A DNA stretch of 64,000 bases from IMGVR_UViG_3300032322_001765:156868-220867, one strand, 5' to 3'; counted from the stretch's first letter, positions 24,798 through 43,665 are shown. Numbers and translations: made by a program. The notes: a model not told the origin generated them from the letters alone.

Positions 24798-24808
24798 AAA
24801 CATTCAAT

Positions 24809-24885: not shown

Positions 24886-24888
24886 AAT

Positions 24889-24966: not shown

Positions 24967-24968
24967 AT

Positions 24969-25044
24969 GCCGTTCAAGCTAACCAAGTGGAAGCGTCTGT
25001 CTGAAGAACAGAATGGCCTGGAGCGTTACCAGGGGTCGGCACCA
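24969..25044 (+). tRNA. tRNA-Phe(GAA) with non-canonical T loop
   Basis: TCTGT-CTGAAGA-ACAGA; T arm CCTGG-AGCGTTA-CCAGG; CCA. Confidence 0.75.
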
Positions 25045-25048
25045 ATTT

Positions 25049-25077
25049 TTGACAAATATTAAATTATTTGTTATACT
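25049..25077 (+). promoter_or_regulatory. Sigma70-type promoter
   Basis: TTGACA-17nt-TATACT. Confidence 0.8.
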
Positions 25078-25081
25078 TGAT

Positions 25082-25156
25082 GAGTCCTTAGTCTAATGGA
25101 TAAGATACTGCATTCCGATTGCATTGATGCAGGTTCGATTCCTGCAGGACTTACCA
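25082..25156 (+). tRNA. tRNA-Arg(CCG)
   Basis: TGCA-TTCCGAT-TGCA, GGTTCGATTCC, CCA. Confidence 0.85.
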
Positions 25157-25188
25157 AAAGTAAATACTATTTTATATAGGAGATTAAA

Positions 25189-25749: not shown

Positions 25750-25757
25750 TAAAAACA

Positions 25758-25786
25758 TTGACATAAAATGTTTTGTGTGATATGAT
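25758..25786 (+). promoter_or_regulatory. Sigma70-type promoter
   Basis: TTGACA-17nt-TATGAT. Confidence 0.8.
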
Positions 25787-25805
25787 TGCGTTTAAATAGT
25801 TTTAT

Positions 25806-25880
25806 GCTGGCGTGGCTCAACGGTAGAGCAACGGATTTGTAATCCGTAGGTTGAGGGTTCGATTCCTTTCGCCAGCACCA
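25806..25880 (+). tRNA. tRNA-Thr(TGT)
   Basis: ACGGA-TTTGTAA-TCCGT, CCA. Confidence 0.95.
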
Positions 25881-25886
25881 TTTTAT

Positions 25887-25962
25887 TGTCTAGTAGCTCA
25901 GTCGGTAGAGCAGGTGACTGTTAATCACCCTGTCGTAGGTTCGATCCCTACCTAGACAGCCA
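25887..25962 (+). tRNA. tRNA-Asn(GTT)
   Basis: GGTGA-CTGTTAA-TCACC, CCA. Confidence 0.95.
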
Positions 25963-25986
25963 AACTTCTTGTATTATAGGTATATT

Positions 25987-26181
25987 ATGTTAGTTACTGA
26001 AGCACAAGGTTACAAACTTTTCTGTGAAACACAAAAAATTGATTTCCCGCCGGACACCTATTATGTTCGTATTTTTACCAAATATGAATTTGCTAAGAAC
26101 TCTGATGCGGAGCAAACTAAGATTGAACTTTTTCTAACTAAAAGTGAATTAGACAATCTTAGACAAATGCTTACTGTCTAA
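25987..26181 (+). CDS. Hypothetical protein
   Basis: MLVTEAQGYKLFC; AGGT SD-like site. Confidence 0.6.
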   Translation: MLVTEAQGYKLFCETQKIDFPPDTYYVRIFTKYEFAKNSDAEQTKIELFLTKSELDNLRQMLTV

Positions 26182-26188
26182 TTAATTT

Positions 26189-26263
26189 CTGGCGTTCGTA
26201 TAAGGGATAATACTACAGACTTCTAATCTGTAAATCCAGGTTCGAGTCCTGGACGCCGGACCA
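26189..26263 (+). tRNA. tRNA-Arg(TCT)
   Basis: ACAGA-CTTCTAA-TCTGT, CCA. Confidence 0.9.
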
Positions 26264-26292
26264 AATTATCAAACTAGCAACAAAAATAATTG

Positions 26293-26321
26293 TTGACGAT
26301 AAATCCTATTTGATGTATAAT
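26293..26321 (+). promoter_or_regulatory. Sigma70-type promoter
   Basis: TTGACG-17nt-TATAAT. Confidence 0.8.
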
Positions 26322-26366
26322 TCTTTTTATCGTAGTTAATATCTTTAACAATTTAATAACATTTAG

Positions 26367-26442
26367 GCACCCATCGTCTAGAGGCCTAGGACATTGCCCT
26401 TTCAAGGCAGTAACACGGGTTCGAATCCCGTTGGGTGTACCA
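26367..26442 (+). tRNA. tRNA-Glu(TTC)
   Basis: Loop CTTTCAA, GGTTCGAATCC, CCA. Confidence 0.95.
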
Positions 26443-26502
26443 GTTAATGGTATAACTAACTGTGATACAAGCACAATATGCTTGGTAGATTATACCATAC
26501 TT

Positions 26503-26579
26503 GCCCACTTAGCTCATTCGGTTAGAGCATCGTCTTGATAAGGCGGGGGTGCTTGGTTCGATTCCAAGAGTGGGCACCA
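26503..26579 (+). tRNA. tRNA-Ile(GAT)
   Basis: Loop TTGATAA, CCA. Confidence 0.95.
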
Positions 26580-26660
26580 TATTGAAGCACATTATTAGTG
26601 ACGCTGGGAAGGACAAGATTCAGCGGTAAATAAATCCTTCATTAGTGTGTTTCAATATGG
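26577..26660 (+). ncRNA. Stem-enclosed RNA containing an H-type pseudoknot
   Basis: CCATATTGAAGCACATTA / TAGTGTGTTTCAATATGG stem; inner CGCTG/CAGCG plus GAAGGA/TCCTTC. Confidence 0.45.
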
Positions 26661-26689
26661 TTGACAATAAATCAGTTTGCTGTTAAACT
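26661..26689 (+). promoter_or_regulatory. Sigma70-type promoter for unknown ncRNA
   Basis: TTGACA-17nt-TAAACT. Confidence 0.75.
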
Positions 26690-26696
26690 AGCGGCA

Positions 26697-26895
26697 AATA
26701 AAGATTCCGGTTACTACTTTCCTGAAAGTAGCGTGTGGCGACGATAATTGACCCGGTGGCAGCAAACCGTTAGCGAGGTAACTCCTCAGGCACTGCTAGG
26801 CAGAATCCCAACTGCACACAGACACGAGAATAAACGGGATGGACAGGGTAACAACTCTGCTAAGGGGCGATGCCTGGAAAACACGTAGCCTTAGC
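26697..26895 (+). ncRNA. Unknown GC-richer structured RNA, copy 1
   Basis: No credible ORF; own promoter; shares GATGGACAGGGTAACAACTC and AAGGGGC...GTAGCCTT hairpin with copy 2; ends approximate. Confidence 0.5.
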
Positions 26896-27022
26896 AATAT
26901 TAGTTTTGCAGTTTGTAAGCACAGAAGCCGGCGCGAGGCATTATGTAACCAAAGCAATAAACAGTAATCACGTGTAAAGCTGTTGAGCGAGGCATATAGT
27001 ATAAACTGCAAAACTAATATTG
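26895..27022. repeat. Perfect 20-bp inverted repeat enclosing 88 nt
   Basis: CAATATTAGTTTTGCAGTTT (26895-26914) / AAACTGCAAAACTAATATTG (27003-27022). Confidence 0.9.
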
Positions 27023-27098
27023 GCTTCATAGTTCAGTTGGTTAGAACGCCGCCCTGTCACGGCGGAGGTCAGGGGTTCGAGTCCCCTTGAGGTCGCCA
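27022..27098 (+). tRNA. tRNA-Asp(GTC)
   Basis: CCGCC-CTGTCAC-GGCGG, CCA. Confidence 0.95.
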
Positions 27099-27180
27099 AA
27101 CATAGGGTAAACTTCTACTTGCACTTAATTTGAACTTAAAGTAAAATATAGGTTCTTTAGTTAAGTCATTGGAGAACAGA

Positions 27181-27384
27181 ATGAATTTGAAATTGAAAGC
27201 AGCATTGTATACCTTTCTATATGCATTAACAGGATTAGGTGTAGGATTTGTAGTATCACAACTGCCTACTTGGACAGTAGTAACACTTGTGTGTATTTTT
27301 GGAATTTGTCTAGCATATATTCTTATACATACAGGACTAAAATACGATGAAGCAGTAAAAGAAATAAGTAAGAAGTACGAATAA
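27181..27384 (+). CDS. Small membrane protein
   Basis: GGAGA SD; two hydrophobic segments. Confidence 0.65.
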   Translation: MNLKLKAALYTFLYALTGLGVGFVVSQLPTWTVVTLVCIFGICLAYILIHTGLKYDEAVKEISKKYE

Positions 27385-27392
27385 TGTAGTTA

Positions 27393-27483
27393 GGAGCGTT
27401 GGCCGAGTGGTCGAAGGCAGTGGTTTGCTAAACCATCGTACATCAAAAATGTACCATTAGTTCGAATCTAATACGCTCCGCCA
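27393..27483 (+). tRNA. tRNA-Ser(GCT)
   Basis: Loop TTGCTAA, long variable arm, CCA. Confidence 0.95.
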
Positions 27484-27510
27484 GTTTTCATATTTTATTT
27501 AGGAAAGAAA

Positions 27511-27690
27511 ATGAAATATCTTAATTTTGTATTACCCGTTATAATCACACTACTTTCAATAATTGGAATTATTGCTAGTTATGGTGCAGGTAACGATTCT
27601 GCACTTAGTGCATATGTTGTAGCATTATCAGGTTGGATGGTAATCGCAACGGATGAAGTTATTAAATTTATTGATAGTCGAAGAAAATAA
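27511..27690 (+). CDS. Small membrane protein (59 aa)
   Basis: AGGA SD; MKYLNFVLPVIITLLSIIGIIA...; two hydrophobic segments. Confidence 0.6.
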   Translation: MKYLNFVLPVIITLLSIIGIIASYGAGNDSALSAYVVALSGWMVIATDEVIKFIDSRRK

Positions 27691-27696
27691 ATTTAT

Positions 27697-27774
27697 GCAA
27701 CGGTGGCAGAGAGGCCCAATGCAAGAGTCTGCAAAACTCTAAAGCCGTCAGTTCGAATCTGACCCGTTGCTCCA
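27697..27774 (+). tRNA. tRNA-Cys(GCA)
   Basis: AGAGT-CTGCAAA-ACTCT, U73, CCA. Confidence 0.95.
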
Positions 27775-27977
27775 AGTATCCCGCAGGCCCTTCTGCGCTA
27801 TGAAAGGGGGTATATTGGCTTCACCATAACGCCAGGGCTCTTACGTTGATAGCCTCAAAGCCCGCTTGACATGGGTGATAGAAAAAACGTAGGTGGGTAT
27901 CACACCTTGCCAGAAGTAAATGTGATGGACAGGGTAACAACTCAGTAAGGGGCTTATGGGAATAAGTAGCCTTACAC
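27775..27977 (+). ncRNA. Unknown structured RNA, copy 2
   Basis: Identical 20-mer at 27924-27943 and covarying terminal hairpin; ends approximate. Confidence 0.5.
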
Positions 27978-28029
27978 TTTATACTATAGGAGATCCTGTT
28001 ATGGATAGTGACAAGAGTGACAAGATAAT

Positions 28030-28105
28030 GCGGGCATAGCTCAGTCGGTAGAGCAGTAGACTTTTAATCTATTGGTCGTGGGTTCGAATCCCCCTGCCCG
28101 TACCA
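28030..28105 (+). tRNA. tRNA-Lys(TTT)
   Basis: Loop CTTTTAA, CCA. Confidence 0.95.
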
Positions 28106-28183
28106 TATAAAAACACATTCGCTTATATTTTAACGGCTTGCAAGGCACGGGCGTATAAGAGTATTGAGTGTGTTTCTATATGG
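28103..28183 (+). ncRNA. Stem-enclosed RNA (third member of the AGTRTGTTTC stem family)
   Basis: CCATATAAAAACACATTC / GAGTGTGTTTCTATATGG. Confidence 0.45.
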
Positions 28184-28189
28184 TTTATT

Positions 28190-28274
28190 GGGGATGCGGC
28201 TAAGTTAGAGAGTGGCGGCGGACTGTAAATCCGTTCTTTCGGGTGAGTAGGTGCGAATCCTTCCATCCCCACCA
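28190..28274 (+). tRNA. tRNA-Tyr(GTA)
   Basis: Loop CTGTAAA, long variable arm, T loop TGCGAAT, CCA. Confidence 0.9.
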
Positions 28275-28280
28275 ATTAAT

Positions 28281-28354
28281 TCCGGTGTAGTATAATGGCA
28301 GTGCGACGGTCTCCAAAACCGTTAGTGGGAGTTCGATTCTCTCCACCGGAGCCA
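28281..28354 (+). tRNA. tRNA-Trp(CCA)
   Basis: ACGGT-CTCCAAA-ACCGT, CCA. Confidence 0.95.
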
Positions 28355-28355
28355 G

Positions 28356-28646
28356 TTATTTAGTGAATCGTCTAATATGTGTAGATATAGGAGTATTATA
28401 TTGTTCTGTACCGCGATCACCGCCTACTGTTAAACGTAAGTTTACATCAACGGTTTTTGCGTAATAGTTTACATAATTGGCAATTTTACTACTTGTTGTT
28501 CTAATTAGACAAATACCGGCATTATTACAAACTATGTAGGTAGTTATTCCGAATTCGTCTTTGTCTATGAATAGCATAACATATTTATTAATATTTGGGC
28601 AACTAATAGTTGCATTATTAATTTGTTTGATGTATAATCTATACAT
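28356..28646 (-). CDS. Hypothetical protein
   Basis: 96-aa ORF filling the gap between two tRNAs on the opposite strand. Confidence 0.45.
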   Translation of the reverse strand: MYRLYIKQINNATISCPNINKYVMLFIDKDEFGITTYIVCNNAGICLIRTTSSKIANYVNYYAKTVDVNLRLTVGGDRGTEQYNTPISTHIRRFTK

Positions 28647-28657
28647 AAGTTAGAAAT

Positions 28658-28734
28658 GCCTCTGTAGCTCAATCGGTCAGAGCAGCGGACTCATAATCCG
28701 TTGGTTAGGGGTTCGAGTCCCTTCGGAGGCACCA
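28658..28734 (+). tRNA. tRNA with CAT anticodon, probably Ile2 (lysidine)
   Basis: GCGGA-CTCATAA-TCCGT, paired 1:72, CCA. Confidence 0.85.
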
Positions 28735-28742
28735 GGTATTAT

Positions 28743-28816
28743 GCGGGATTAGTTTAATGGTAAAACGAAAGCCTTCCAAGCTCTAGTTATCAGTTCGATT
28801 CTGATATCCCGCTCCA
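28743..28816 (+). tRNA. tRNA-Gly(TCC)
   Basis: Loop CTTCCAA, U73, CCA. Confidence 0.95.
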
Positions 28817-28825
28817 AGTTAGAAT

Positions 28826-28909
28826 GCCCGGGTGGTGAAATGGTAGACACAAAGGACTTAAAATCCTTCGCCGCAAGGCGTGCCGGTTCGAGTCCGGCTT
28901 CGGGTACCA
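28826..28909 (+). tRNA. tRNA-Leu(TAA)
   Basis: AAGGA-CTTAAAA-TCCTT, long variable arm, CCA. Confidence 0.95.
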
Positions 28910-28917
28910 AGTAACAT

Positions 28918-29000
28918 GCGCATATGGCGAAATTGGTAGACGCGCCAGATTTAGGTTCTGGTCTCAACGGGTGGGGGTTCGAGTCCCTCTATGCGCACCA
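28918..29000 (+). tRNA. tRNA-Leu(TAG)
   Basis: CCAGA-TTTAGGT-TCTGG, CCA. Confidence 0.95.
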
Positions 29001-29033
29001 CTGTTCTCTTTTATAAAGATAAATAATTGTACT

Positions 29034-29207
29034 ATGGCACAATTAAAAATCTTCATTAACGACAAACTATACAAAACAGTACCATTAGATACTGAAAAAT
29101 ATGAGCCTTCTTGGTATTGGCCTCAAATTAAGGCTGATAAAGAAGCCGGTTTACTAAATTCTTTTAACATTGAAGAATCAATGAAAGTAGAATTTAGAAA
29201 AATATAA
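29034..29207 (+). CDS. Hypothetical protein
   Basis: MAQLKIFINDK; TAAATA 8 nt upstream; ORF-track start overlaps a tRNA. Confidence 0.6.
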   Translation: MAQLKIFINDKLYKTVPLDTEKYEPSWYWPQIKADKEAGLLNSFNIEESMKVEFRKI

Positions 29208-29285
29208 ACCATAATAGTTTGTATACTTTCAATATTGCAATGATATGCTCACGCATATCAAAAAAGCAAGCCTATTTTTTTAGCT

Positions 29286-29293
29286 TATAAATA
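29286..29293 (+). promoter_or_regulatory. T4-type late promoter
   Basis: Perfect TATAAATA upstream of the fMet-like tRNA. Confidence 0.7.
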
Positions 29294-29311
29294 AGTCGTA
29301 GGACATTAAGA

Positions 29312-29384
29312 CGCGGGTTAGGGAAGAGGTCATCCCGTTAGGCTCATAACCTGAAGATCGTTGGTTCAAATCCAGCACCCGCAT
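29312..29384 (+). tRNA. Initiator-like tRNA-fMet(CAT), atypical, no encoded CCA
   Basis: CGCGGGT/ACCCGCA with C1.A72; TTAGG-CTCATAA-CCTGA; flanked by 10-bp extension stem. Confidence 0.8.
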
Positions 29385-29402
29385 CTTAGTGTCTTACAAT
29401 AA

Positions 29403-29481
29403 CCGGGTGTAGCTTAGTCTGGCTTAAAGCGCCTGCTTTGGGAGCAGGAGATCGTGAGTTCGAATCCCACTTCCCGGACCA
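29403..29481 (+). tRNA. tRNA-Pro(TGG)
   Basis: CCTGC-TTTGGGA-GCAGG, CCA. Confidence 0.95.
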
Positions 29482-29500
29482 ATTCTTTTTAAGGTGATAT

Positions 29501-29638
29501 ATGGCTAAGCAAGTTGGAGTAAAAGAACGTAAGAAGGTAGTCAAATTAACTTGTCAGGGAGGAAGTAAACCCAAAACAAGTACTATGAATAAGGATTTAA
29601 AAAGAAGTTACAAGAAGTATAGAGGACAAGGTAAATAG
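29501..29638 (+). CDS. Small basic protein (45 aa)
   Basis: AAGGTG SD; MAKQVGVKERKK...TMNKDLKRSYKKYRGQGK; C-terminal YRGQG is a pattern I recall from T4-like phage small proteins. Confidence 0.7.
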   Translation: MAKQVGVKERKKVVKLTCQGGSKPKTSTMNKDLKRSYKKYRGQGK

Positions 29639-29712
29639 CATCGTTAGTTCAGCGGTAGAATCCCTGCCTTACAAGCAGGTTGTCGTTGGTTCGAATCCAG
29701 CACGATGCACCA
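29638..29712 (+). tRNA. tRNA-Val(TAC)
   Basis: CCTGC-CTTACAA-GCAGG, CCA. Confidence 0.95.
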
Positions 29713-29718
29713 AGTATT

Positions 29719-29793
29719 GCGGGTGTAATTCAGGGGTAGAATGTTTGCTTGCCAAGCAAAATGTCAGGAGTTCGAATCTCCTCACCCGCTCCA
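29719..29793 (+). tRNA. tRNA-Gly(GCC)
   Basis: TTTGC-TTGCCAA-GCAAA, CCA. Confidence 0.95.
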
Positions 29794-29809
29794 ATTTTAT
29801 ATAATTTTT

Positions 29810-31050
29810 ATGGCACATCAACAACAATTTGATTTTGTACAAAGAGTAAAGAATCGCTATCCAATAAATTTTTTTCAGAAAAAAGTTTTAGAAATTGGTA
29901 GCTTAAACATTAATGGCACAATAAGAGATTTTTTCAACTATTGTGATTATTTGGGAGTTGATGTAGGACAAGGTCCATGCGTCGATATAGTTTGTGAAGG
30001 TCAAAATGTAGATCATCCCGACAACACTTATGACACAGTTGCAAGTTGTGAATGTTTTGAACACAACCCTCATTGGGTAGAAACTTTTCAAAATATGTAT
30101 CGTATGACTAAGCCGGGTGGTTTAGTTTTTATGAGTTGTGCAACTACAGGTAGACCTGAACATGGTACAACACGTACTAGTCCTAGTGATAGTCCGTTAA
30201 CAATTGGTATAGGTTGGGATTACTATAAAAATTTAACTGAACAAGATTTTAGAGATAACTTTAACATTGATGAAATGTTCAGTGAATATAAATTTGAAGT
30301 TGGTACATCACATCCTGATTTATATTTTTATGGTGTTAAAAAAACAAGTGATGTAATTGATTTTAGAAAATACTTTACTGAAAAGTATTACGACAGTAAT
30401 TGGTTAAAAACTGCAAAAGAAACTTATGACAATAACGATCCTTACCCGCATCTTGTCATAGATGATTTTTTACCAGTTGACGTAATGGAAAAAGTTTTAA
30501 ATTCTTTCCCTCAACCCGGCGACTTAGATTGGTGGGAATTCAAGAATGATAACGAAATAAAATTAGGCAGTAGAAAAGAAATTCAATTACCGCAAGTAAC
30601 AAGAAATGTATGTGCAGAATTAAATTCTGGCTATGTGTTAGATTGGTTAGAGTATTTAACCAGTGTACCTGGGCTTATTGCTGATACAAGATTGTTTGGT
30701 GGTGGGTTGCATCAAATTGTGCGTGGTGGAAAATTAAACATCCATGTAGATTTTAATATTGAACCACATACAAAATTACGTAGGCGACTTAATGTTCTAA
30801 TCTATCTTAACAAAGATTGGAAAGAAGAATACGAAGGTTATTTAGAATTGTGGGACAAAACAAAAACACAATGTGTAAAAAAGATAGCGCCCGTTTTTAA
30901 TCGTTGTGTAATTTTTAATACTAATGATACTTCATGGCATGGGCATCCTACTCCATTAAATACGCCCGAACATATTACAAGAAAAAGTTTAGCCATGTAT
31001 TATTACTCTGTCGATACAGAGAACGTAAAAGTTCATTCAACCATTTATTA

Positions 31051-31051
<1 letters not shown>
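29810..31051 (+). CDS. Methyltransferase fused to Fe(II)/2OG oxygenase
   Basis: N: VLEIGSLNING...CECFEH; C: GGGLHQI...IHVDFN...WHGHP; start moved to MAHQQQ because the track start lies in tRNA-Gly. Confidence 0.8.
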
Positions 31052-31140
<89 letters not shown>

Positions 31141-31797: not shown

Positions 31798-32979
31798 ATG
31801 GCTGGCCGCAATTTTCTATTTGTTCCAGGACCAACAAATATTCCCGATAGAGTTTTAAGAGCAATGGTAGTATCTATGGAAGATCATAGGTCACCTGATT
31901 TCCCTTCACTAACTCTTGAAATACTGCCAAAGTTAAAAAAACTTTTTCGCACAACAACAGGTACACCGTTTATATTCCCGTCTAGCGGCACAGGCTGTTG
32001 GGAAGCAGCACTTACAAATACTTTATCACCTGGCGACAAAATATTAGCAGCACGATTTGGACAATTCAGTCATCTATGGATTGAGATGTGCCAAAGGTTG
32101 GGATTTGAAGTCGAAATAGTTGATTGTGAATGGGGCACTGGTGTACCACTTGACATTTACAGAGATAAATTAGAAGCAGATACCGAACACAAAATTAAAG
32201 CTGTGTTAGTTACTCACAATGAAACAGCAACTGGTGTCACTTCAGATGTTGCAGGCGTACGCCGTATAATGAATAATGCAAATCATCCTGCAATGATATT
32301 TGTCGATGCAGTCTCATCATTTGCTAGTATTGATTTAAGATTTGATGAGTGGGGTATTGATATGTGTGTAACGGGATCTCAAAAAGGTCTTATGTTACCT
32401 GCAGGACTAGGTATTCTATGTGCAAGTGAAAGGGCATTAGAAATGCGCCACCTTGCAAAATCTAAAAGAGCATATTTTGATTTAAACGATATGTTAAATT
32501 CAAATAGAAACGGATACTTCCCGTATACCCCTGCTCTTTCGTTGTTATATGGATTAAAAGAATCACTCTGTATACTTGAGGAAGAAGGTTTAGATAATGT
32601 TATCAACAGACATAACTATCTTGCTTCGGGGGTACGTGCAGCAGTAGAAGGATGGGGACTAAAACTTTGTGCTAAGGATCCTAAATGGAATAGTAACACT
32701 GTTTCAGCTATTATGGTTCCGGAAGGCATTGACGCTGCAAAAGTAATATCAGCAGCATATAATCATTATAACTTATCTTTAGGTGCAGGATTAAATAAAG
32801 TTGCAGGCAAATTATTTAGAATTGGGCATTTAGGTGACATGAATGAGGTGCATTTGTTAGCCGCGATAGCAGGTGCAGAAATGGCCATGTTGGACGTTGG
32901 TATAAAAATAGAATCAGGTAGTGGGGTTGCCGCTGCAATTAATTATTATCGAATGCACAAAGGAACAGTCAATGTATAA
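31798..32979 (+). CDS. sgaA: Serine-glyoxylate / alanine-glyoxylate aminotransferase (class V PLP)
   Basis: MAGRNFLFVPGPTNIPDRVLRAM, SSGTGCWEAA, HNETATG, DAVSS, GSQKG, RIGHLG. Confidence 0.85.
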   Translation: MAGRNFLFVPGPTNIPDRVLRAMVVSMEDHRSPDFPSLTLEILPKLKKLFRTTTGTPFIFPSSGTGCWEAALTNTLSPGDKILAARFGQFSHLWIEMCQRLGFEVEIVDCEWGTGVPLDIYRDKLEADTEHKIKAVLVTHNETATGVTSDVAGVRRIMNNANHPAMIFVDAVSSFASIDLRFDEWGIDMCVTGSQKGLMLPAGLGILCASERALEMRHLAKSKRAYFDLNDMLNSNRNGYFPYTPALSLLYGLKESLCILEEEGLDNVINRHNYLASGVRAAVEGWGLKLCAKDPKWNSNTVSAIMVPEGIDAAKVISAAYNHYNLSLGAGLNKVAGKLFRIGHLGDMNEVHLLAAIAGAEMAMLDVGIKIESGSGVAAAINYYRMHKGTVNV

Positions 32980-33046
32980 AGTAGGTGAAGCAATTTTTTA
33001 TAGTTTAGTAGCAGTTTTTATTGTGGCATTTTTACTTACTATTTAA
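32972..33046 (+). CDS. Small hydrophobic peptide (24 aa)
   Basis: MYKVGEAIFYSLVAVFIVAFLLTI; AAGGA SD-like site. Confidence 0.4.
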   Translation: MYKVGEAIFYSLVAVFIVAFLLTI

Positions 33047-33049
33047 TAT

Positions 33050-33358
33050 TGTTGTATGAAACAATCCGAAACAGGTTCTGGACGGCGGTTCGATTCCGCC
33101 CATCTCCACCAAATGCAATCTTGGGATGATTATTTTCCGCCTTTGAATTTGTGGAACTATAGTATCAGTTGGCAATGGAAGATTTCATTTGATGGGGATG
33201 ATCAGGTCTCGACAGGGTCAAGAGTACGAGAGTGGACAACACGGTAGGCGATGACCGTAAATCAAGCAAAACTATAACTGCAAACGCAGCTAATGATGAG
33301 GTATACGCTCTAGCAGCGTGATCTCCGGGGCAACTATGCCTTGTTACCAAAAATAGTT
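33050..33358 (+). ncRNA. ssrA: Circularly permuted (two-piece) tmRNA; tag ANAANDEVYALAA
   Basis: 3' end GGTTCGATTCC...CATCTCCACCA (ends 33111) precedes 5' end GGGGATG (33194); G3.U70; tag ORF 33280-33321; outer ends approximate. Confidence 0.9.
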
Positions 33359-33359
33359 T

Positions 33360-33384
33360 AAAAGGCTACTTCGGTAGCCTTTTT
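33360..33384 (+). terminator. Intrinsic terminator
   Basis: AAAAGGCTAC-TTCG-GTAGCCTTTTT. Confidence 0.9.
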
Positions 33385-33403
33385 CCATTATAAATATACT
33401 ATT

Positions 33404-33988
33404 ATGATAGTTTATATACACGGCGCCAGCGCAACTAAAGATAGCTTTTCTTACATTAGACAATTTGTTAGAGATAATATAGAGTTACCTGATATCGCAT
33501 TAGAGTATAACAGTAGTGATGGGTTTGATTATAATATAGGCACTATGTTTGGTAGATTGGATGATGCTGAAAAACTATTTTTCGTTTCGCATAGTTTAGG
33601 TGGCATATACGCATTGCATTTAGCAAATCATTATAAAGATAGAACAATCGGTGGCGTTTCACTAAGTACTCCATACGGTGGATGTAGACAAGCAGATTTT
33701 GCTAGATATTTTTTACCTTTTAATAAGTTAATGAAAGATATTGGAACAATGTCAGATCCAATGATAGAGGCAAAGCGTTTACCTGCTCCTAAAAATTGGA
33801 CTAATGTTGTCACAACAAGAGGAGATAGTCCTTGGATACAAGAACCAAATGATGGAGTGGTTACTATTGAAAGCATGAAGTATCGTGCAGATTTTGAATT
33901 GGTTGAGGCAAATATTAACCATTATGAAGTTGTATTAAATCCAAACATTGTTGAACTTATTTTAGATAGAATTAAAAAAGCAATTTAA
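33404..33988 (+). CDS. Alpha/beta hydrolase
   Basis: YIHG, SHSLGG nucleophile elbow, NDGVV, distal H. Confidence 0.8.
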   Translation: MIVYIHGASATKDSFSYIRQFVRDNIELPDIALEYNSSDGFDYNIGTMFGRLDDAEKLFFVSHSLGGIYALHLANHYKDRTIGGVSLSTPYGGCRQADFARYFLPFNKLMKDIGTMSDPMIEAKRLPAPKNWTNVVTTRGDSPWIQEPNDGVVTIESMKYRADFELVEANINHYEVVLNPNIVELILDRIKKAI

Positions 33989-34012: not shown

Positions 34013-34030
34013 TTGTAACATATCTGTAAT
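34013..34030 (+). promoter_or_regulatory. Pho box upstream of pstS
   Basis: TTGTAAC-ATAT-CTGTAAT, 11-nt period direct repeat matching the PhoB consensus. Confidence 0.7.
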
Positions 34031-34083
34031 ATTCTAACTTCTAAATATTTTTGTACACATGTACATTTTATCGGAGACAGAGT

Positions 34084-35106
34084 ATGAAAAAAATATTTGC
34101 ATTATTGGCGTTTGTGTCAACATTTGCATCAGCAGCAGAATTCACCGGAGCAGGAGCAACATTCCCGTTCCCAATCTATGCTAAGTGGGCTGAAGCATAC
34201 AAAGCACAAACTGGCATTGGTCTAAATTATCAATCAATTGGTAGTGGCGGTGGTATTCGTCAAATCAAAGCAAAGACGGTTGACTTTGGCGCAAGTGATA
34301 TGCCATTGAAAAAAGAAGAACTTGACAAAGAAGGTCTTGTACAATTTCCAGCAATCATCGGTGGTGTTGTACCAGTATTCAACCTAGACGGTATTGATGC
34401 TGGTAAATTAAAACTTACTCCAGATGTGATTGCTAATATTCATTTAGGTAAAATTAACAAATGGAATGACAAAGCAATTGCTGAATTAAATCCAGGAGTT
34501 GCTCTTCCTGCTATGAACATTACTGTAGTTCATCGTGCAGACGGTTCAGGTACTACATTTATCTGGACAAACTTTTTAGGCAAAGCAAATGCTGAATTTC
34601 AAAAAACAGTAGGCGAAGGCACAGCAGTTAAATGGCCAGTTGGTGTAGGCGGTAAAGGCAACGAAGGTGTAGCAGCACAAGTGCAAAGAATCAAAGGTGC
34701 ATTTGGTTATGTTGAGTATGCTTATGCTAAAAGAAACAAGATTCCTTATGCAGCGTTGAAAAATCGTGATGGTAACTTTGTACTACCAGATGATACTACA
34801 TTCAAAGCAGCCGCAGCTAATGCTGATTGGAACAATGCGCCAGGGATGTATTTGTTACTCACATGGCAGACAGGTAAAGATGCATGGCCAGCAACAGGTG
34901 CAAGTTTCATTCTAATGCACAAGCAACAGGCAGATACATTAACGGGTCGTGCAGTTCTCAAGTTCTTTGACTGGTCATACAAGAATGGTGGCCAAATGTC
35001 AACTGAGTTAGAGTATGTTCACATGCCAGCTGATGTAATTAAATTAGTTCAGGAAAATTGGAAGAAGGATTTCCGTGGTCCTGATGGTAACCCAATTTGG
35101 AAATAA
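34084..35106 (+). CDS. pstS: Phosphate ABC transporter substrate-binding protein PstS
   Basis: Signal peptide; GAGATFP, YQSIGSGGG, FGASD, RADGSGTT, GKGNEGV; GGAGA SD. Confidence 0.95.
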   Translation: MKKIFALLAFVSTFASAAEFTGAGATFPFPIYAKWAEAYKAQTGIGLNYQSIGSGGGIRQIKAKTVDFGASDMPLKKEELDKEGLVQFPAIIGGVVPVFNLDGIDAGKLKLTPDVIANIHLGKINKWNDKAIAELNPGVALPAMNITVVHRADGSGTTFIWTNFLGKANAEFQKTVGEGTAVKWPVGVGGKGNEGVAAQVQRIKGAFGYVEYAYAKRNKIPYAALKNRDGNFVLPDDTTFKAAAANADWNNAPGMYLLLTWQTGKDAWPATGASFILMHKQQADTLTGRAVLKFFDWSYKNGGQMSTELEYVHMPADVIKLVQENWKKDFRGPDGNPIWK

Positions 35107-35110
35107 ACAC

Positions 35111-35139
35111 TTGACAACCGTTAACACTGATGATACAAT
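35111..35139 (+). promoter_or_regulatory. Sigma70-type promoter overlapping an 11-bp inverted repeat
   Basis: TTGACA-17nt-TACAAT; AACCGTTAACA/TGTTAACGGTT plus T tract. Confidence 0.7.
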
Positions 35140-35166
35140 GTTAACGGTTTTTTATAAGGACACACA

Positions 35167-36573
35167 ATGAAAACATTAGGTAAATTAACTTTGGCTATTT
35201 CTTTAGCCTTCTCAGTTCCAGCATATGCTGATGAATATTTGAGTACATTAAATATTTTGCGAGACAAAGGTATCATTACAAAACAAGAGTATGATACTAA
35301 AGTACGTGATTATGAAGAAAAAGCAGAAAACAAAAAATTTGCAGAGCAACGAATCGACAAAGATGTTAGCGATTCAGTCAAATTTAGACAAGCAAGAGCA
35401 AACGACGGATCAGTTACAGAAAACGGATTTGGACTTAAATCCAAAGATGGAAACACGACTGCCCAATTTACAGGTCGATTACATATGGACTATCGTCAGT
35501 ACGACCCCAATTATGGTACAGGTCAAACCACGGATTCGTATCAGAACCTAGCAGAAGTTCGTCGTGCTAGATTTGGCGTACGTGGTCAATTTCAAAAAGA
35601 TTTCAAGTATCAACTACTTGCAAACTTTGGTAATGACGTAGGTGCTTCTGCTACTTCCAGTACCGCAGATGAGATGTGGGTTAACTATGCAGCCAATCCT
35701 GAAATGCAATTTCAGTTTGGTTTATTCAAAATGCCATTCAGCTTAGAGCAATTAACAAGTTCTAATAATATTGATTTTATGGAGCGTAGTTTAATTGGTA
35801 ACACTGATGGTGAGTTCATTCCTGCAAAAGAAACTGGATTCATGGTTCATGGTATACCTAAACCAGGTCTATTGTATCAAGTAGCATTAAGCCGTGGTCG
35901 TGCAAACAAAGATGCAACTAACGATGGTTTTGACTATATTGGTCGTGTAGTAACAAACGTTGCTGAACTACAAGGTAGCAAAGCATATGTATTACATTTA
36001 GGCGCTGCATACAGTATGGGTGATATCAAAGGTGGTGTTACACCAGCTAGTGGTAGAACAGAGGCTCGCACACAGTCAGCATGGTTTACAGGTCCTGCAT
36101 TATCTGGTACCACGACAAGAACTCGCCAAGGATTAGAAGCAGCATTTGCTTACAATGGTTTAAAGTTACAAGGCGAACAGTTTAATTTCAAGTATGATCC
36201 TACAACAGGTTCCGATCAAGAAATTAAAGGTTACTACGTACAAGCATTGTATAACTTAACAGGCGAAAGTCACAATTATAAAGACGGTATCTTTAACTGG
36301 ATTAAACCAAACAATCCAACAGATAAAGGTGGTCGCGGTGCATGGCAAGTTGGTGTGCGTATGAGTGAGTTTGATGCAAGTGGTATCACTGTTGTAACAG
36401 GCAAATCTAATCGTGCTACTGCCATGACATACGGAATTACTTGGTTTGCAACTGACAATTTACGCTTCATGCTCAACTATGTTGACACAAAGTTTGATTC
36501 GTTAGTAGGAAGTTCAGGTAGCCGTGTAAATGGTGACAGAGCAGTTATGTTTAGAAGCCAATTAAGTTTCTAA
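35167..36573 (+). CDS. Phosphate-selective porin, OprO/OprP family
   Basis: Signal peptide; GRLHMD, RRARFGVRG, GLFKMPFSLEQLTSS...FMERS, RYSE-like RMSEFD, C-terminal F. Confidence 0.85.
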   Translation: MKTLGKLTLAISLAFSVPAYADEYLSTLNILRDKGIITKQEYDTKVRDYEEKAENKKFAEQRIDKDVSDSVKFRQARANDGSVTENGFGLKSKDGNTTAQFTGRLHMDYRQYDPNYGTGQTTDSYQNLAEVRRARFGVRGQFQKDFKYQLLANFGNDVGASATSSTADEMWVNYAANPEMQFQFGLFKMPFSLEQLTSSNNIDFMERSLIGNTDGEFIPAKETGFMVHGIPKPGLLYQVALSRGRANKDATNDGFDYIGRVVTNVAELQGSKAYVLHLGAAYSMGDIKGGVTPASGRTEARTQSAWFTGPALSGTTTRTRQGLEAAFAYNGLKLQGEQFNFKYDPTTGSDQEIKGYYVQALYNLTGESHNYKDGIFNWIKPNNPTDKGGRGAWQVGVRMSEFDASGITVVTGKSNRATAMTYGITWFATDNLRFMLNYVDTKFDSLVGSSGSRVNGDRAVMFRSQLSF

Positions 36574-36591
36574 AATTATTTACTGTAAAAC

Positions 36592-36618
36592 AAAAAAGGC
36601 ATTTATATGCCTTTTTTT
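36592..36618 (+). terminator. Intrinsic terminator
   Basis: AAAAAAGGCAT-TTAT-ATGCCTTTTTTT. Confidence 0.85.
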
Positions 36619-36624
36619 GTGGCT

Positions 36625-36642
36625 TTGTAATCGTCTTGTAAC
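36625..36642 (+). promoter_or_regulatory. Second Pho box
   Basis: TTGTAAT-CGTC-TTGTAAC; same 11-nt distance to TAAATA as the pstS box. Confidence 0.6.
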
Positions 36643-36664
36643 ATAAGATATTCTAAATAGTTTT

Positions 36665-37474
36665 ATGAAATCACAATATCGCTCAATTTTTATATCAGAT
36701 ATACATTTAGGTACTAAAGATTGTAAGGCGGAGGCGCTAAACAATTTTTTAAAAAATAATACCTGTGAAATGTTGTATTTGGTTGGCGATATTATTGATG
36801 CATGGAAAATAAAACAAAATAAATGGCGTTGGAAACAAAGTCATACAAATGTTGTACGTAGAATATTAGGTCATGCTAAAAGAAATACTAGAGTAATCTA
36901 CGTGTTAGGAAATCATGATGAGTTTCTAAGACCATTTTTACAATATAATTTAAATTTTGGTATGGTAGAATTACATAACCAAATTGAACATATTGGTGTT
37001 GACGGAAAACATTATCTTGTTGTACATGGGGATTTATTTGATGGTATAACTAGACTTGCACCATGGTTATCTTTTTTAGGAGACAAAGCATATGATTTTA
37101 TCTTATCAGTTAATAGCAAATTTAATTGGTTCTTACATAGAATTGGTTTTGGCTATTTTAGCCTTAGCCGTTTTCTTAAGCACAAAGTAAAAAAAGCAGT
37201 AGATTTTATATTCCAGTTCGAGAAAAACTTAGCAGGTTATTGCAAAAAACGCGGGTTTGATGGTGTGATATGTGGTCACATACATCATGCAGAAATAAAA
37301 GAAATAGACGGTGTTACATACATGAACGATGGTGATTGGGTAGAAAGTTGCACTGCTCTGGTAGAGCATCTAGATGGTAGATGGGAAATTGTAACGTGGG
37401 TGCAGGAGAAAGACGATGTGGTTGATGATATTGATAGCAGTACACATAAGCGATCCAAAGGACATTCCGGGTAA
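36665..37474 (+). CDS. Metallophosphoesterase, PlcP-like phospholipase C (usually annotated UDP-2,3-diacylglucosamine hydrolase)
   Basis: SDIHLGT, LVGDIID, GNHDEFLR, HGDLFD, LGDKAY, SLS..LK.KVKKAV, GVICGHIH, NDGDWVESCTALVE. Confidence 0.75.
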   Translation: MKSQYRSIFISDIHLGTKDCKAEALNNFLKNNTCEMLYLVGDIIDAWKIKQNKWRWKQSHTNVVRRILGHAKRNTRVIYVLGNHDEFLRPFLQYNLNFGMVELHNQIEHIGVDGKHYLVVHGDLFDGITRLAPWLSFLGDKAYDFILSVNSKFNWFLHRIGFGYFSLSRFLKHKVKKAVDFIFQFEKNLAGYCKKRGFDGVICGHIHHAEIKEIDGVTYMNDGDWVESCTALVEHLDGRWEIVTWVQEKDDVVDDIDSSTHKRSKGHSG

Positions 37475-37586
37475 AATAACATTAGAATTTCAAGACGTAA
37501 GTGTGTGCGAACAAACATTAAAATCAATGACTTACTGGTTAAAGTTTGATAATTTCAAAGTAGAAGGAAAATGTATTAAAAAATGA
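37416..37586 (+). CDS. Hypothetical protein (56 aa)
   Basis: AGGAG SD; MWLMILIAVH...GKCIKK; ATGA overlap with next gene. Confidence 0.55.
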   Translation: MWLMILIAVHISDPKDIPGKITLEFQDVSVCEQTLKSMTYWLKFDNFKVEGKCIKK

Positions 37587-38296
37587 TGAGATTAAGTGAT
37601 AAAATTACTATAGTAATTCCTTGTAAAAACGAAGAAAACTACATAATTCATTTATTGACGGCTTTACGGTCTCAAAAATTGGGAGATACTAGAATTATAA
37701 TTGCTGATAGTTCTACAGACAATACAAGAGATATTATTCAAAAAAATAGTGCATTTTTAAATTTAGAAATTATCGACGGTGGTACTGTATCTCAAGCTAG
37801 GAATGCGGGAGCTAAACTTGCAACTACCCCTTATATTTTATTCATTGACGCAGATGTTAGATTCTTTGATGGTTATGTGATTCGTGACGCGGTTGAAGAA
37901 GTTGTGTTTTATGACCTCGACTTAATTGGTGCAAAAGTGTACTGTTATGAAAATGATTGGCGAGCAAATTTAAGCTTTACGATTTTTAATTTTGTAAACG
38001 ACATTTTAAAACATTTTAATCCATTCGCAGTGGGTGCATTTATGTTGACACGTAAAGACAAATTTGAAGAATACGGCGGCTTCAGTGAACGTTACATTAC
38101 GTCAGAAGATTTTTTTCTTTCTAGAAAATATGACCCGAAAAAATTCAAAATTTTAAATCATTATTTTGGACAAGATTCACGTAGATTTAAGAAAATGGGT
38201 TATTTTGGTATGGCGACATATCTACTTAAAAATTTTATAAATCGCAATAATAAAAAATATTGGGATAAATTAGAACACAATAAGTATTGGAGTTAA
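37583..38296 (+). CDS. GT2 glycosyltransferase
   Basis: IVIPCKNE, IADS.STD, ARNAGA, FIDAD, GGF, ED. Confidence 0.9.
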   Translation: MMRLSDKITIVIPCKNEENYIIHLLTALRSQKLGDTRIIIADSSTDNTRDIIQKNSAFLNLEIIDGGTVSQARNAGAKLATTPYILFIDADVRFFDGYVIRDAVEEVVFYDLDLIGAKVYCYENDWRANLSFTIFNFVNDILKHFNPFAVGAFMLTRKDKFEEYGGFSERYITSEDFFLSRKYDPKKFKILNHYFGQDSRRFKKMGYFGMATYLLKNFINRNNKKYWDKLEHNKYWS

Positions 38297-38385
38297 TTTT
38301 AAATCGGATGCAAACATAGAGCATCTCTGGAACTCGTAACCAGATGCCCGGTTGGGCTATTTTTTTGGTAATAAATACATATATT

Positions 38386-39030
38386 ATGCTTCCAGTAATA
38401 GCACTGTTTATCCATCAACCAAAATGTTCAGTACAAAGTGGCAATGGAATAATTAAAGCCCTCAGCCCATACTACCGATTTAAACTTTTTACCAAACATG
38501 AACTTGAGGATGACTTCTTTGACGACGTTGACTTAATCGCTATCCCAGGGGGAATTGGTGAAGATGTTTCATATCACAACTTAATGAAAATCCATGGACA
38601 AAGAATACGAAAATTCATAGCAGGTGGAGGAAAGTACTTAGGTATCTGTATGGGTGGATACTGGGCAGATAAAGATTTTTTTAATATAATTGATGACGTA
38701 AGAGCTGTACAATACATCAGAAGACCAAATACGGATACTCGCAGACCACACGCTAAAAACATTGAAATCAACTGGTTAGGTCAAGATATAAAGATGTATT
38801 TTTACGATGGATGTGCCTTCGTCGGAGATGAAACTAAATTCACTACAATTGCTAGATATAAAAATAATGACCCAATGGCTATTATTAAAGGTAACGTGGG
38901 ATTAATTGGTTGTCACCCAGAAAGTGAACGTCACTGGTATAATGATCATAGTTGGATGCGTAAACACTATCATAACGGGACGCACTATCCTTTATTATTA
39001 GATTTTGTAAATTGTCTGATGAGGAAATAA
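38386..39030 (+). CDS. Class I glutamine-amidotransferase-like (BPL-N-type) protein
   Basis: IPGG, YLGICMGGY, GCHPE triad motifs; start moved to MLPVIALF after TAAATA. Confidence 0.75.
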   Translation: MLPVIALFIHQPKCSVQSGNGIIKALSPYYRFKLFTKHELEDDFFDDVDLIAIPGGIGEDVSYHNLMKIHGQRIRKFIAGGGKYLGICMGGYWADKDFFNIIDDVRAVQYIRRPNTDTRRPHAKNIEINWLGQDIKMYFYDGCAFVGDETKFTTIARYKNNDPMAIIKGNVGLIGCHPESERHWYNDHSWMRKHYHNGTHYPLLLDFVNCLMRK

Positions 39031-42462: not shown

Positions 42463-43665
42463 TTAAATAAACCATGTAACTATAGAATATCTAGTTCCCT
42501 TAGTTACAGTTAACACCTCATGAGGATACATATAAGTTGATGGGAACATTAAAACTGATCCTTTTTTAAGTTTATACGTTAGTTCTTTACCAAAAAAAGA
42601 AAAATCGCCTCCCTCATAATCATCATTTAAAGCTATCGAACAAGAAACGGATCTTGGTTGTTCTGTAAAACTATCACAATGAATGCTGTAAAAATTTCCT
42701 TCACTGTATTTTAAAAAGTTGTAACCTGTATCACTGTTAATGTGAACTGTGGGATGTTTTTTCCTATATTTTTGCATTGCATTTATCATACATTCATGTA
42801 GTTGCGTATCTAGACTTTGTGCATTTTTGTTCAGTTCAAAAACTACCGGATCACTAATTAATAGAGTAAAAACATTTCGTACTTCAGGATTTTGTATTGC
42901 GGCAGCACCAACTGCTGCCAATTGTAATTTTTCGTCATTTCCAAATTCTTTAATAATTCTATCACATAATGAATGTGGGATAATGTTTTCATATACTTCA
43001 ATAAAATCTGTTATTTTACTTTGAGAAGTTATGACATAGGAACTTTCTTCTTGAACGGAATTTTCTTCTTGATTAGAAATTTGATTCGTTATATTATAAG
43101 TTGTTATTGATTCTTGTTTTTTTGATTTATCACTACTTTTATCAAAATATGCGTAAGCTCTTTCGCCTCTACTTCTTACATAATGTAAAAAAACTTGTAC
43201 ATATCTTTCACCGTCATACATTTCTCTCCAATGTTCAGCTTCGCATCCAAGGTAAATCATAGCGTCACCTGATTTTAAGTTGAGTTTAATGGTCTCACCT
43301 TTTGGATTTTTAATAAAAATGGGCCATTCTTTATCACCATCTAAGTGAACTGTTAAACTTATTTCACATGCATCTCTATCTTTGTGTATATGAAGTTCTG
43401 CTCCTTTTTTGTAAACTCTAGAATATGTGTATGTTGGCAAAACGTTTTCACCAATAAATTCACCTACTTCTGGTGTAGAATTACATAATAATTCTAAAAA
43501 ATCTATGTAATTATAAGAGGAACTGGAAGAAGGTATTTGAGGATCGCCTCCTATATTATTTTCTTCACAAAAATGTTCAAAATTATTTGCTAGTATTTTA
43601 GCCCTTTCTTTAGAAATAAAATTAGGTATATACACATAATTATTTTCAGTTAATAATGGGTTCAT
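42463..43665 (-). CDS. Protein with two Fe(II)/2OG oxygenase domains
   Basis: N: LHIHKDRDACEIS...EHWR; C: IHCD...YEGGD...PHEV...GTRYS. Confidence 0.85.
   Translation of the reverse strand: MNPLLTENNYVYIPNFISKERAKILANNFEHFCEENNIGGDPQIPSSSSSYNYIDFLELLCNSTPEVGEFIGENVLPTYTYSRVYKKGAELHIHKDRDACEISLTVHLDGDKEWPIFIKNPKGETIKLNLKSGDAMIYLGCEAEHWREMYDGERYVQVFLHYVRSRGERAYAYFDKSSDKSKKQESITTYNITNQISNQEENSVQEESSYVITSQSKITDFIEVYENIIPHSLCDRIIKEFGNDEKLQLAAVGAAAIQNPEVRNVFTLLISDPVVFELNKNAQSLDTQLHECMINAMQKYRKKHPTVHINSDTGYNFLKYSEGNFYSIHCDSFTEQPRSVSCSIALNDDYEGGDFSFFGKELTYKLKKGSVLMFPSTYMYPHEVLTVTKGTRYSIVTWFI

Follow-up and report, generated by a model that had tools for sequence, protein, structure and literature searches.

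Results

The analysed window, i.e. the whole 64 kb stretch of DNA, carries on its + strand two adjacent groups of genes, each preceded by a Pho-box-like direct repeat. The first repeat (34013-34030, TTGTAAC-ATAT-CTGTAAT) consists of two 7-bp units 11 bp apart and lies 10 bp upstream of a CTAAAT -10-like hexamer (34041-34046). It is followed by pstS (34084-35106), encoding a periplasmic phosphate-binding protein with a signal peptide. The likely start of pstS is the ATG at 34084, which is preceded by a GGAGA Shine-Dalgarno sequence (34073-34077), and not the upstream TTG at 34051. The protein scored 423 bits on the NCBIfam PstS equivalog PRK10918 (cut-off 339) and 377 bits on TIGR00975, and the nearest cellular PstS proteins, from Oxalobacteraceae and other betaproteobacteria, are 65-70% identical. 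Downstream lies a gene for an OprO/OprP-type phosphate-selective porin with a signal peptide (35167-36573; Pfam Porin_O_P, PF07396, 179 bits against a cut-off of 20.9), which is syntenic with pstS in most relatives. Between both genes we found a hairpin with a T-run (35116-35153, -14.6 kcal/mol, z -3.7), inferred to be a partial terminator or attenuator and overlapped by a sigma-70-like promoter match TTGACA-17-TACAAT (35111-35139, 11 of 12 positions matched). The porin gene is followed by an intrinsic terminator hairpin with a T-run (36592-36618, -12.9 kcal/mol, z -3.0), and a terminator in the same position is conserved in relatives that carry the type A promoter.

The second Pho-box-like repeat (36625-36642, TTGTAAT-CGTC-TTGTAAC) is also located 10 bp upstream of a CTAAAT hexamer (36653-36658). 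It precedes a plcP-family metallophosphoesterase gene (36665-37474), a small open reading frame (ORF) of 56 amino acids (37416-37586) and a GT2 glycosyltransferase gene (37583-38296). Because the ATG of plcP lies only 7 nt after the hexamer, the mRNA is probably leaderless. The small ORF, beginning with MWLMILIAVH and containing two conserved Cys, overlaps the variable 3' tail of plcP in the +1 frame and the first codon of the GT gene. It was also called by independent gene callers but has no Pfam match. Downstream of the GT gene follow a conserved two-hairpin RNA-like element of unknown function (38301-38343), in which seven of 10 base pairs show compensatory changes and for which no Rfam family was found, and a gene for a BPL_N/class-I glutamine-amidotransferase-like protein (38386-39030; Pfam BPL_N, 53.6 bits). 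The start of the latter at 38386 is supported by alignment to relatives. It often neighbours the module, although its position varies. PDB sequence searches with this protein and with a neighbouring alpha/beta-hydrolase found nothing. All genes and sites listed in an earlier note based on the sequence alone are present.

The window is phage DNA. The region occurs 100% identical in IMG/VR, the GT2 gene lies on contigs of up to 300 kb, and the window contains a tail-fibre gene, 27 tRNAs and a tmRNA. Hits with 85-94% identity on contigs of 350 kb likewise have phage-like contexts, whereas the nearest 50%-identity cluster outside the phage group is only 53% identical. Megablast of 22 kb of the window against GenBank phages found nothing.

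The metallophosphoesterase belongs to the PlcP family and not to LpxH. Reference sequences were taken from chromosomes mislabelled as plasmids in PLSDB and were identified by their neighbours, not by locus tag. In BLASTP, the phage protein is 46% identical over 250 residues (E 4e-82) to the orthologue of Sinorhizobium meliloti SMc00171, identified by the adjacent sinR/sinI, and it is 54.7% identical to the orthologue of Pseudomonas aeruginosa PA3219, identified by the downstream GT and cyaB. Characterised PlcPs are themselves only 46-47% identical to each other (PMC8528852). In contrast, the match to Escherichia coli LpxH extends over only 120 residues at 23% identity, and the LpxH equivalog models PRK05340 and TIGR01854 gave 44.7 and 35.7 bits, far below their cut-offs of 134 and 190 bits. 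In the phylogenetic tree, the LpxH proteins of E. coli, Neisseria, Ralstonia, Acinetobacter, Legionella and Bacteroides are separated from the clade holding PlcP and the phage protein with an SH-aLRT support of 99. Ralstonia encodes both paralogues, and the phage protein groups with the non-LpxH one. The protein matches Pfam Metallophos, and the metal-binding residues D12, H14, G41-D42, G82-N83-H84-D85, H121-G122-D123 and G204-H205-x-H207 (motifs DxH, GD, GNHD, HGD and GHxH) are conserved with the S. meliloti and P. aeruginosa PlcP proteins. The blocks HGDLFDG, LGDKAYD, SLSRFLKHKVKKAV and NDGDWVESCTALVE, which the earlier note had named as PlcP-type, are present and align with the same two proteins.

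The exact pattern TGTAAY-N5-TGTAAY occurs only at the two described places in 64 kb on both strands, where 0.14 matches are expected and 1 of 100 shuffles reached 2. With one mismatch allowed, the pattern is no longer above chance, and the statistical weight therefore comes from the exact matches, their position and their conservation in relatives. In 746 kb of related phage DNA, 38 of 41 distinct sites lie within 160 nt upstream of pstS, plcP or an outer-membrane protein gene. The same architecture is found upstream of pstS in 15 of 27 distinct related phage loci, and in 21 of 64 distinct related loci an exact box starts 38-51 nt before the plcP ATG, mostly at 38-39 nt. Both sites have the geometry of a Pho box, i.e. 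two 7-bp direct repeats related to CTGTCAT (consensus as quoted in PMC8528852), 11 bp apart and replacing the -35 element. The half-sites read TGTAAY instead of the consensus TGTCAY, but 35 of 80 betaproteobacterial pstS genes carry TGTMAY-N5-TGTMAY 72-139 nt upstream, including TGTAAY forms. Regulation is not uniform across the family, because about a third of relatives lack a box before plcP and have the RNA-like element there instead, 6-8 nt upstream of the gene, and another subgroup has a different, near-palindromic site before pstS.

IMG/VR holds 282 relatives, and more than 8000 protein clusters matched at E 1e-5 or better. In the about 90 loci examined, the small ORF follows plcP in all but a few (48-96% amino-acid identity), and the order plcP, small ORF, GT is constant in about 85 loci while the flanks shuffle. 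The third position is occupied either by GT2 or by a true Agt orthologue, a GT4 that is 38% identical to Agt1 (PA3218; E 5e-77). The two were never found together in the loci examined, and the label changes at least 11 times on the plcP tree, including between sister lineages. No GT4 is present in the window. The GT2 protein (237 amino acids, DAD motif) scored 77 bits on Pfam Glycos_transf_2, which overshadowed a match to Glyco_transf_21 (25.5 bits, gathering score 21.7). A single-sequence AlphaFold model reached a pLDDT of only 43, whereas a model with an alignment reached 88, but the fold search with the latter gave only generic GT-A matches, led by the teichoic-acid and oligosaccharide enzymes TarS, TarP, WrtF and AvpGT.

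Discussion

Our findings suggest that this locus is a phosphate-stress module of a very large (at least 300 kb) freshwater phage whose host is probably a betaproteobacterium, although the nearest cellular PlcP is only about 50-53% identical. We propose, with moderate confidence and from sequence evidence only, that two transcription units are each driven by a promoter in which a Pho box takes the place of the -35 element, so that host PhoB~P would switch them on when the infected cell is phosphate-starved. The pstS-oprP unit would raise phosphate capture at the outer membrane and in the periplasm. The second unit encodes a predicted Mn-dependent phospholipase C, which would cleave the phosphorylated head group from host glycerophospholipids and leave diacylglycerol. 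The released phosphate might then be available for phage nucleotide synthesis, while the glycosyltransferase might turn diacylglycerol into a phosphorus-free glycolipid, so that the membrane stays intact until lysis. As far as sequence evidence can go, each step of the earlier note's reading held up. However, its statement that a non-GT4 partner is unusual needs softening, since bacterial plcP types next to other glycosyltransferases have already been listed (Sebastian et al., PMC4796936).

The interchange of GT2 with a bona fide Agt at the identical position supports a diacylglycerol-glycosylating role for GT2 but does not prove it. It remains possible, though unlikely, that GT2 is functionally unrelated to PlcP, glycosylates LPS or polysaccharide, a protein or phage DNA, and merely shares the transcript, with diacylglycerol being handled by host enzymes. 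In line with this, GT2 has no detectable relationship to any characterised lipid glycosyltransferase, albeit without a reference Pgt or MgdA sequence in the comparison, its sequence matches to solved structures are weak and confined to the N-terminal part, it has no hydrophobic segment, and the nearest NCBIfam model is an arsenosugar-type GT, far below its cut-off. Against this stand the repeated alternation with Agt, the absence of a GT4 elsewhere in the window and the location of the closest plasmid-borne bacterial homologue next to a PAP2 lipid phosphatase. The same chemistry could also serve surface remodelling rather than phosphorus supply, for example to exclude superinfecting phages, alter grazing or stabilise the envelope of a cell that must support a long jumbo-phage infection. 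Lipid remodelling changes predator and phage interactions in bacteria (PMC9457565, PMC9804370, PMC9938194), and the swapping between GT2 and GT4 could reflect selection on which head group is displayed. We consider this less probable, because the location next to pstS and oprP behind the same Pho-box promoter type would tie expression to phosphate stress and not to infection in general, but the two benefits are not mutually exclusive.

It is also doubtful that the repeats are a phage-specific promoter or operator read by a phage factor on a fixed infection schedule. The TAAATA -10-like motif resembles T4-type late promoters and recurs elsewhere (TTCTAAATA 7 times in the window), the half-sites deviate from TGTCAY, and other relatives use different upstream elements. 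However, the paired repeat is almost confined to phosphate-related genes, has the 7+4+7 geometry and the 10-bp distance to the -10 that are typical of Pho promoters, and occurs before cellular pstS genes. Least likely is an LpxH-type UDP-2,3-diacylglucosamine hydrolase acting in lipid A synthesis. Relatives are named "LpxH" or "UDP-2,3-diacylglucosamine hydrolase" by JGI and GenBank, and only LpxH structures were found in the PDB by sequence, but these matches have an E value of about 5e-4 and cover the N-terminal half only, the scores on the LpxH models are below the cut-offs, and the tree and pairwise comparisons place the protein with PlcP.

We speculate, as a tentative possibility, that large freshwater phages carry a self-contained three-gene lipid-conversion cassette in which the 56-amino-acid protein is a necessary adaptor or regulator that bacteria lack, and in which GT2 represents a previously unrecognised class of diacylglycerol glycosyltransferase making a different glycolipid from Agt. 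Expression would then be set either by a Pho box driving a leaderless mRNA or, in other lineages, by a new structured 5' RNA element.

Known viral phosphate genes (pstS, phoA, phoH) act on uptake or signalling. A viral PlcP-GT module would add the conversion of the host's own membrane phospholipid into nucleotide phosphorus while the membrane is rebuilt with glycolipid. By a rough estimate, a phage genome of 300-350 kb needs about 0.7 million phosphorus atoms per copy, and with a phospholipid pool of the order of millions of molecules in a small bacterium this would be a meaningful reserve. We found no report on viral plcP in the literature searched, which did not cover subscription journals, and viral gene catalogues file such genes as "lpxH, LPS biosynthesis" (for example PMC9611531); their ecological meaning is probably being misread.

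LpxH belongs to the same calcineurin-like superfamily and shares the N-terminal metal motifs, but it is a different family whose C-terminal half does not align. Homologues (47% and 38% identity) of the phage protein are encoded by Pelagibacter phage Mosig EXVC030M (Mosig_00120, "putative UDP-2,3-diacylglucosamine hydrolase") and Synechococcus phage S-SRM01, and they fall on the PlcP side of the split. In Mosig the gene is divergently adjacent to pstS, with 11-bp-spaced TTAACA repeats between them. However, no glycosyltransferase follows the gene, the small downstream ORF is not homologous to the 56-amino-acid ORF, the gene is annotated as LpxH, and lipids are not mentioned in the related Melnitz paper. 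Freshwater amoC-phages are large phages of betaproteobacteria that also carry a host-like phosphate-selective porin (bioRxiv 10.64898/2026.06.18.733297), but they have 1-6 tRNAs, and the words lipid, phospholipase, LpxH, glycosyltransferase and pstS do not occur in that text. In cyanomyophages, pstS and phoA appear to be induced through host PhoBR under phosphate stress, with pstS behind a host-type Pho box (Zeng and Chisholm 2012; see also PMC10976474). In the phage studied here, the box is of the proteobacterial TGTCAY type and not of the cyanobacterial type, and the regulon is extended by a porin and a lipid-remodelling operon.

The module most resembles the bacterial PlcP-Agt lipid-remodelling pathway known from S. 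meliloti (SMc00171), SAR11 HTCC7211, Phaeobacter MED193, P. aeruginosa (PA3219/PA3218) and Burkholderia cenocepacia (BCAL2364-2366). The enzyme family is the same, with an identity as high as that among characterised members, a Pho box, here a motif match only, lies upstream and a glycosyltransferase gene immediately downstream, and sister phages carry a true Agt orthologue. Some betaproteobacteria even have plcP-agt directly upstream of pstSCAB. In contrast to this pathway, the module is encoded by a virus, a conserved overlapping ORF that the bacterial operons examined lack is inserted between plcP and the GT gene, the glycosyltransferase of this phage is a GT2 rather than a GT4, the plcP mRNA is probably leaderless, and no dagK is present.

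Gene organization and phage origin of the region

ORF listing and profile searches confirmed a row of co-directional genes on the + strand. An alpha/beta-hydrolase (33404-33988) is followed by pstS (34084-35106), which scores 423 bits on the PstS equivalog model against a cut-off of 339, by an OprO/P porin gene (35167-36573; Pfam, 179 bits), a calcineurin-like phosphoesterase (36665-37474), a 56-aa ORF (37416-37586), a GT2 glycosyltransferase (37583-38296), a BPL_N/GATase-like protein (38386-39030) and, further on, an AhpC peroxiredoxin. The translations of PstS and the porin begin with typical signal peptides. One hairpin with a T-run follows the porin gene (36592-36618) and another lies between pstS and the porin gene (35116-35153). 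The 194-aa alpha/beta-hydrolase directly upstream of the pstS promoter has a lipase-like SHSLGG nucleophile elbow and is also located near plcP in two of the other loci. It could be a lipase or esterase linked to lipid metabolism, although it has no PDB or NCBIfam match.

The window is phage DNA. It contains a permuted (two-piece) tmRNA of the betaproteobacterial type (33007-33386; Rfam RF01850, 137 bits; tag ANAANDEVYALAA) and an array of 27 tRNA genes (24148-31140), both of which hint at a betaproteobacterial host. It also encodes a 1830-aa tail-fibre-like protein, HNH endonuclease, thymidylate synthase and many radical-SAM genes with PHROG matches. The radical-SAM/SPASM genes form a very large cluster (700-23400) with at least eight members by PHROG matches, and this cluster is also present in relatives. 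The region was found with 100% identity in IMG/VR, and the GT2 lies on contigs of up to 300 kb. A search with part of the window found no close isolate among GenBank phages. A class-V aminotransferase (31798-32979), unusual for a phage, scores 596 bits on the BhcA (L-aspartate-glyoxylate aminotransferase) equivalog model, just under its cut-off of 650. A protein encoded on the - strand (42463-43665) matches the PHROG "ferrochelatase" family in its N-terminal half and a 2OG-Fe(II) oxygenase in its C-terminal half, and a CobS-like ATPase is located at 51708-52871.

The phosphoesterase belongs to the PlcP family

The phosphoesterase (36665-37474) is of the PlcP type and not LpxH. It scores only 45 and 36 bits on the NCBIfam LpxH equivalog models, the cut-offs of which are 134 and 190, and LpxH chains in the PDB match only the N-terminal 120 residues at E about 5e-4. 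Named reference sequences were obtained from PLSDB, in which several "plasmid" records (CP090106.1, NZ_CP115947.1, NZ_CP137508.1 and others) are erroneously labelled and represent whole chromosomes or chromosome fragments, for example a 3.72-Mb S. meliloti record labelled pSymB. The references were identified by their gene neighbourhood. The S. meliloti gene lies next to a LuxR-type regulator and the AHL synthase, which are probably sinR (SMc00170) and sinI (SMc00168), so that the gene would be SMc00171, the founding PlcP. The P. aeruginosa gene is followed by a glycosyltransferase gene and an adenylate cyclase gene that appears to be cyaB (PA3217), which would make the pair PA3219 and PA3218, characterised by Jones et al. 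as PlcP and Agt1.

The phage protein is 46% identical to the S. meliloti protein over 250 residues (E 4e-82) and 54.7% identical to the P. aeruginosa protein. Characterised PlcP proteins are 46-47% identical to one another (PMC8528852). In contrast, E. coli LpxH aligns at 23% identity over 120 residues. In a maximum-likelihood tree of 64 sequences, six LpxH proteins form one side of a branch with an SH-aLRT support of 99, while the phage protein, its phage relatives, both PlcP references and the representatives of the 50% clusters form the other side. Ralstonia solanacearum has one gene on each side of this split. All metal-binding motifs are intact, and the PlcP-specific sequence blocks listed in the earlier note are present.

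Pho-box-like repeats upstream of pstS and plcP

The exact pattern TGTAAY-N5-TGTAAY occurs twice in 64 kb, at 34013-34030 and at 36625-36642, against 0.14 expected occurrences, and each site is followed after exactly 10 bp by CTAAAT. This arrangement, with the box in place of the -35 element, appears to be the classical layout of PhoB-dependent promoters, for which the consensus CTGTCAT-N4-CTGTCAT has been quoted (PMC8528852). For pstS, a 31-nt leader with a GGAGA Shine-Dalgarno sequence follows. For plcP, the ATG begins 7 nt after the hexamer and we therefore infer that the transcript is leaderless.

The comparative evidence is stronger than the statistics within the window. Across 746 kb of 89 related phage loci there are 41 distinct exact sites, of which 22 lie upstream of plcP, 15 upstream of pstS, 1 upstream of an outer-membrane beta-barrel gene and 3 elsewhere. 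Before plcP, the box in most cases starts 38-39 nt from the ATG, after a terminator. Among the 80 bacterial genomes with the most similar PstS (65-70% identity; Undibacterium, Duganella and other Burkholderiales, Gallionellales, Nitrosomonadales), 35 have the same motif 72-139 nt upstream of pstS, and several of these use TGTAAY half-sites.

However, regulation is not uniform across the family. About a third of the relatives carry, instead of a box, a conserved two-hairpin element 6-8 nt before the plcP ATG, where no Shine-Dalgarno sequence is visible. The element of about 43 nt has the order AAATCGG, hairpin 1, CT and hairpin 2 (CTGG..CGTAA..CCAG). Seven of 10 pairs show compensatory changes in 18 copies, and no Rfam family matches. 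In the lineage of the window the element is located at 38301-38343, where it precedes the BPL_N-like gene. In the phage subgroup that has the two-hairpin element before plcP, a different, near-palindromic conserved site, TTGTGAC-GGTTCC-GTTAC, replaces the TGTAAY repeat upstream of pstS in eight loci and upstream of plcP in one. This site may be a degenerate Pho box or a site for another regulator.

The module and its glycosyltransferase

IMG/VR holds 282 relatives of the phage plcP, of which 80 were retrieved, and 9 more loci were obtained from assemblies. The flanks of the module vary: pstS-porin may lie upstream or downstream, and BPL_N, AhpC or an OMP gene may be the neighbour. The conserved 56-aa ORF follows plcP in all but a few loci, and next comes either the GT2 (50 loci) or a GT4 (34 loci), the two never being found together. 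The GT4 is 38% identical over its full length to P. aeruginosa Agt1 (E 5e-77) and about 39% identical to GT4 genes that follow plcP in betaproteobacterial plcP-agt-pstSCAB clusters. It is therefore an Agt orthologue. In some uncultured betaproteobacteria and some Undibacterium, plcP-agt lies directly upstream of pstSCAB-phoU, or plcP lies within 4 kb of pstS, which is a plausible source arrangement for the phage module.

On the plcP tree the GT2/GT4 label requires at least 11 changes, including changes between close sisters such as loci L138 and L146. Repeated replacement at one fixed position is the main argument that GT2 does the same job as Agt. Independent support for this role is thin. 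The structural model (pLDDT 88) is a plain GT-A fold with TarS, TarP, WrtF and AvpGT as best matches, a DAD motif is present in the translation, and no membrane segment is predicted. The nearest plasmid-borne bacterial homologue (31% identity) lies between a PAP2 lipid phosphatase and an LssY_C protein. Sebastian et al. already described bacterial plcP types with non-Agt glycosyltransferase neighbours (PMC4796936), and a GT-A partner is therefore not without precedent.

The start of the small ORF (MWLMILIAVH; 37416-37586) and its whole length are conserved at 48-96% identity. In the +1 frame it overprints the part of plcP that forms the variable, length-polymorphic tail beyond the catalytic core. 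Independent gene callers also call it, but it has no Pfam match. The bacterial plcP-agt operons examined, that of P. aeruginosa and that of an uncultured betaproteobacterium (L096), have no room for such a gene, and the ORF is the most phage-specific part of the module.

Proposed mechanism and comparison with known systems

We propose that under phosphate limitation host PhoB~P activates both promoters and that PstS and the porin increase phosphate capture. PlcP would cleave phospholipids to diacylglycerol and a phosphorylated head group, the phosphate of which enters phage nucleotide synthesis, while the glycosyltransferase would convert diacylglycerol to a glycolipid. This chemistry is established for bacterial PlcP and Agt (PMC4796936, PMC8528852, PMC13691135). 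For the phage, everything beyond family membership, promoter architecture and synteny is inference. Alternatively, the benefit might be surface remodelling, GT2 might have an unrelated role, as its generic fold matches leave possible despite its repeated exchange with Agt, or the promoters might be phage-specific rather than PhoB-dependent, although the same motif precedes some bacterial pstS genes. LpxH function was also considered, but the phage protein scores far below the cut-offs of the LpxH models and is separated from LpxH in the tree.

Among the full texts searched, we found no report of viral plcP or of viral lipid remodelling under phosphate stress. Homologues in Pelagibacter phage Mosig and cyanophage S-SRM01 are annotated as LpxH, and a virome table from Lake Baikal lists "lpxH" under LPS biosynthesis. 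In Mosig, pstS and the plcP homologue are divergent neighbours, and the 150-bp spacer between them (7850-7997 of the Mosig sequence examined) holds TTAACA repeats 11 bp apart, which may form a shared Pho box of the SAR11 or cyanobacterial type. Phage-borne oprP was reported in 2026 for amoC-phages, and Pho-regulated phage pstS has long been known. The pathway itself is known from bacteria and probably occurs here in a viral version, the own peculiarities of which are the 56-aa ORF, the GT2 alternative and the probable leaderless mRNA.
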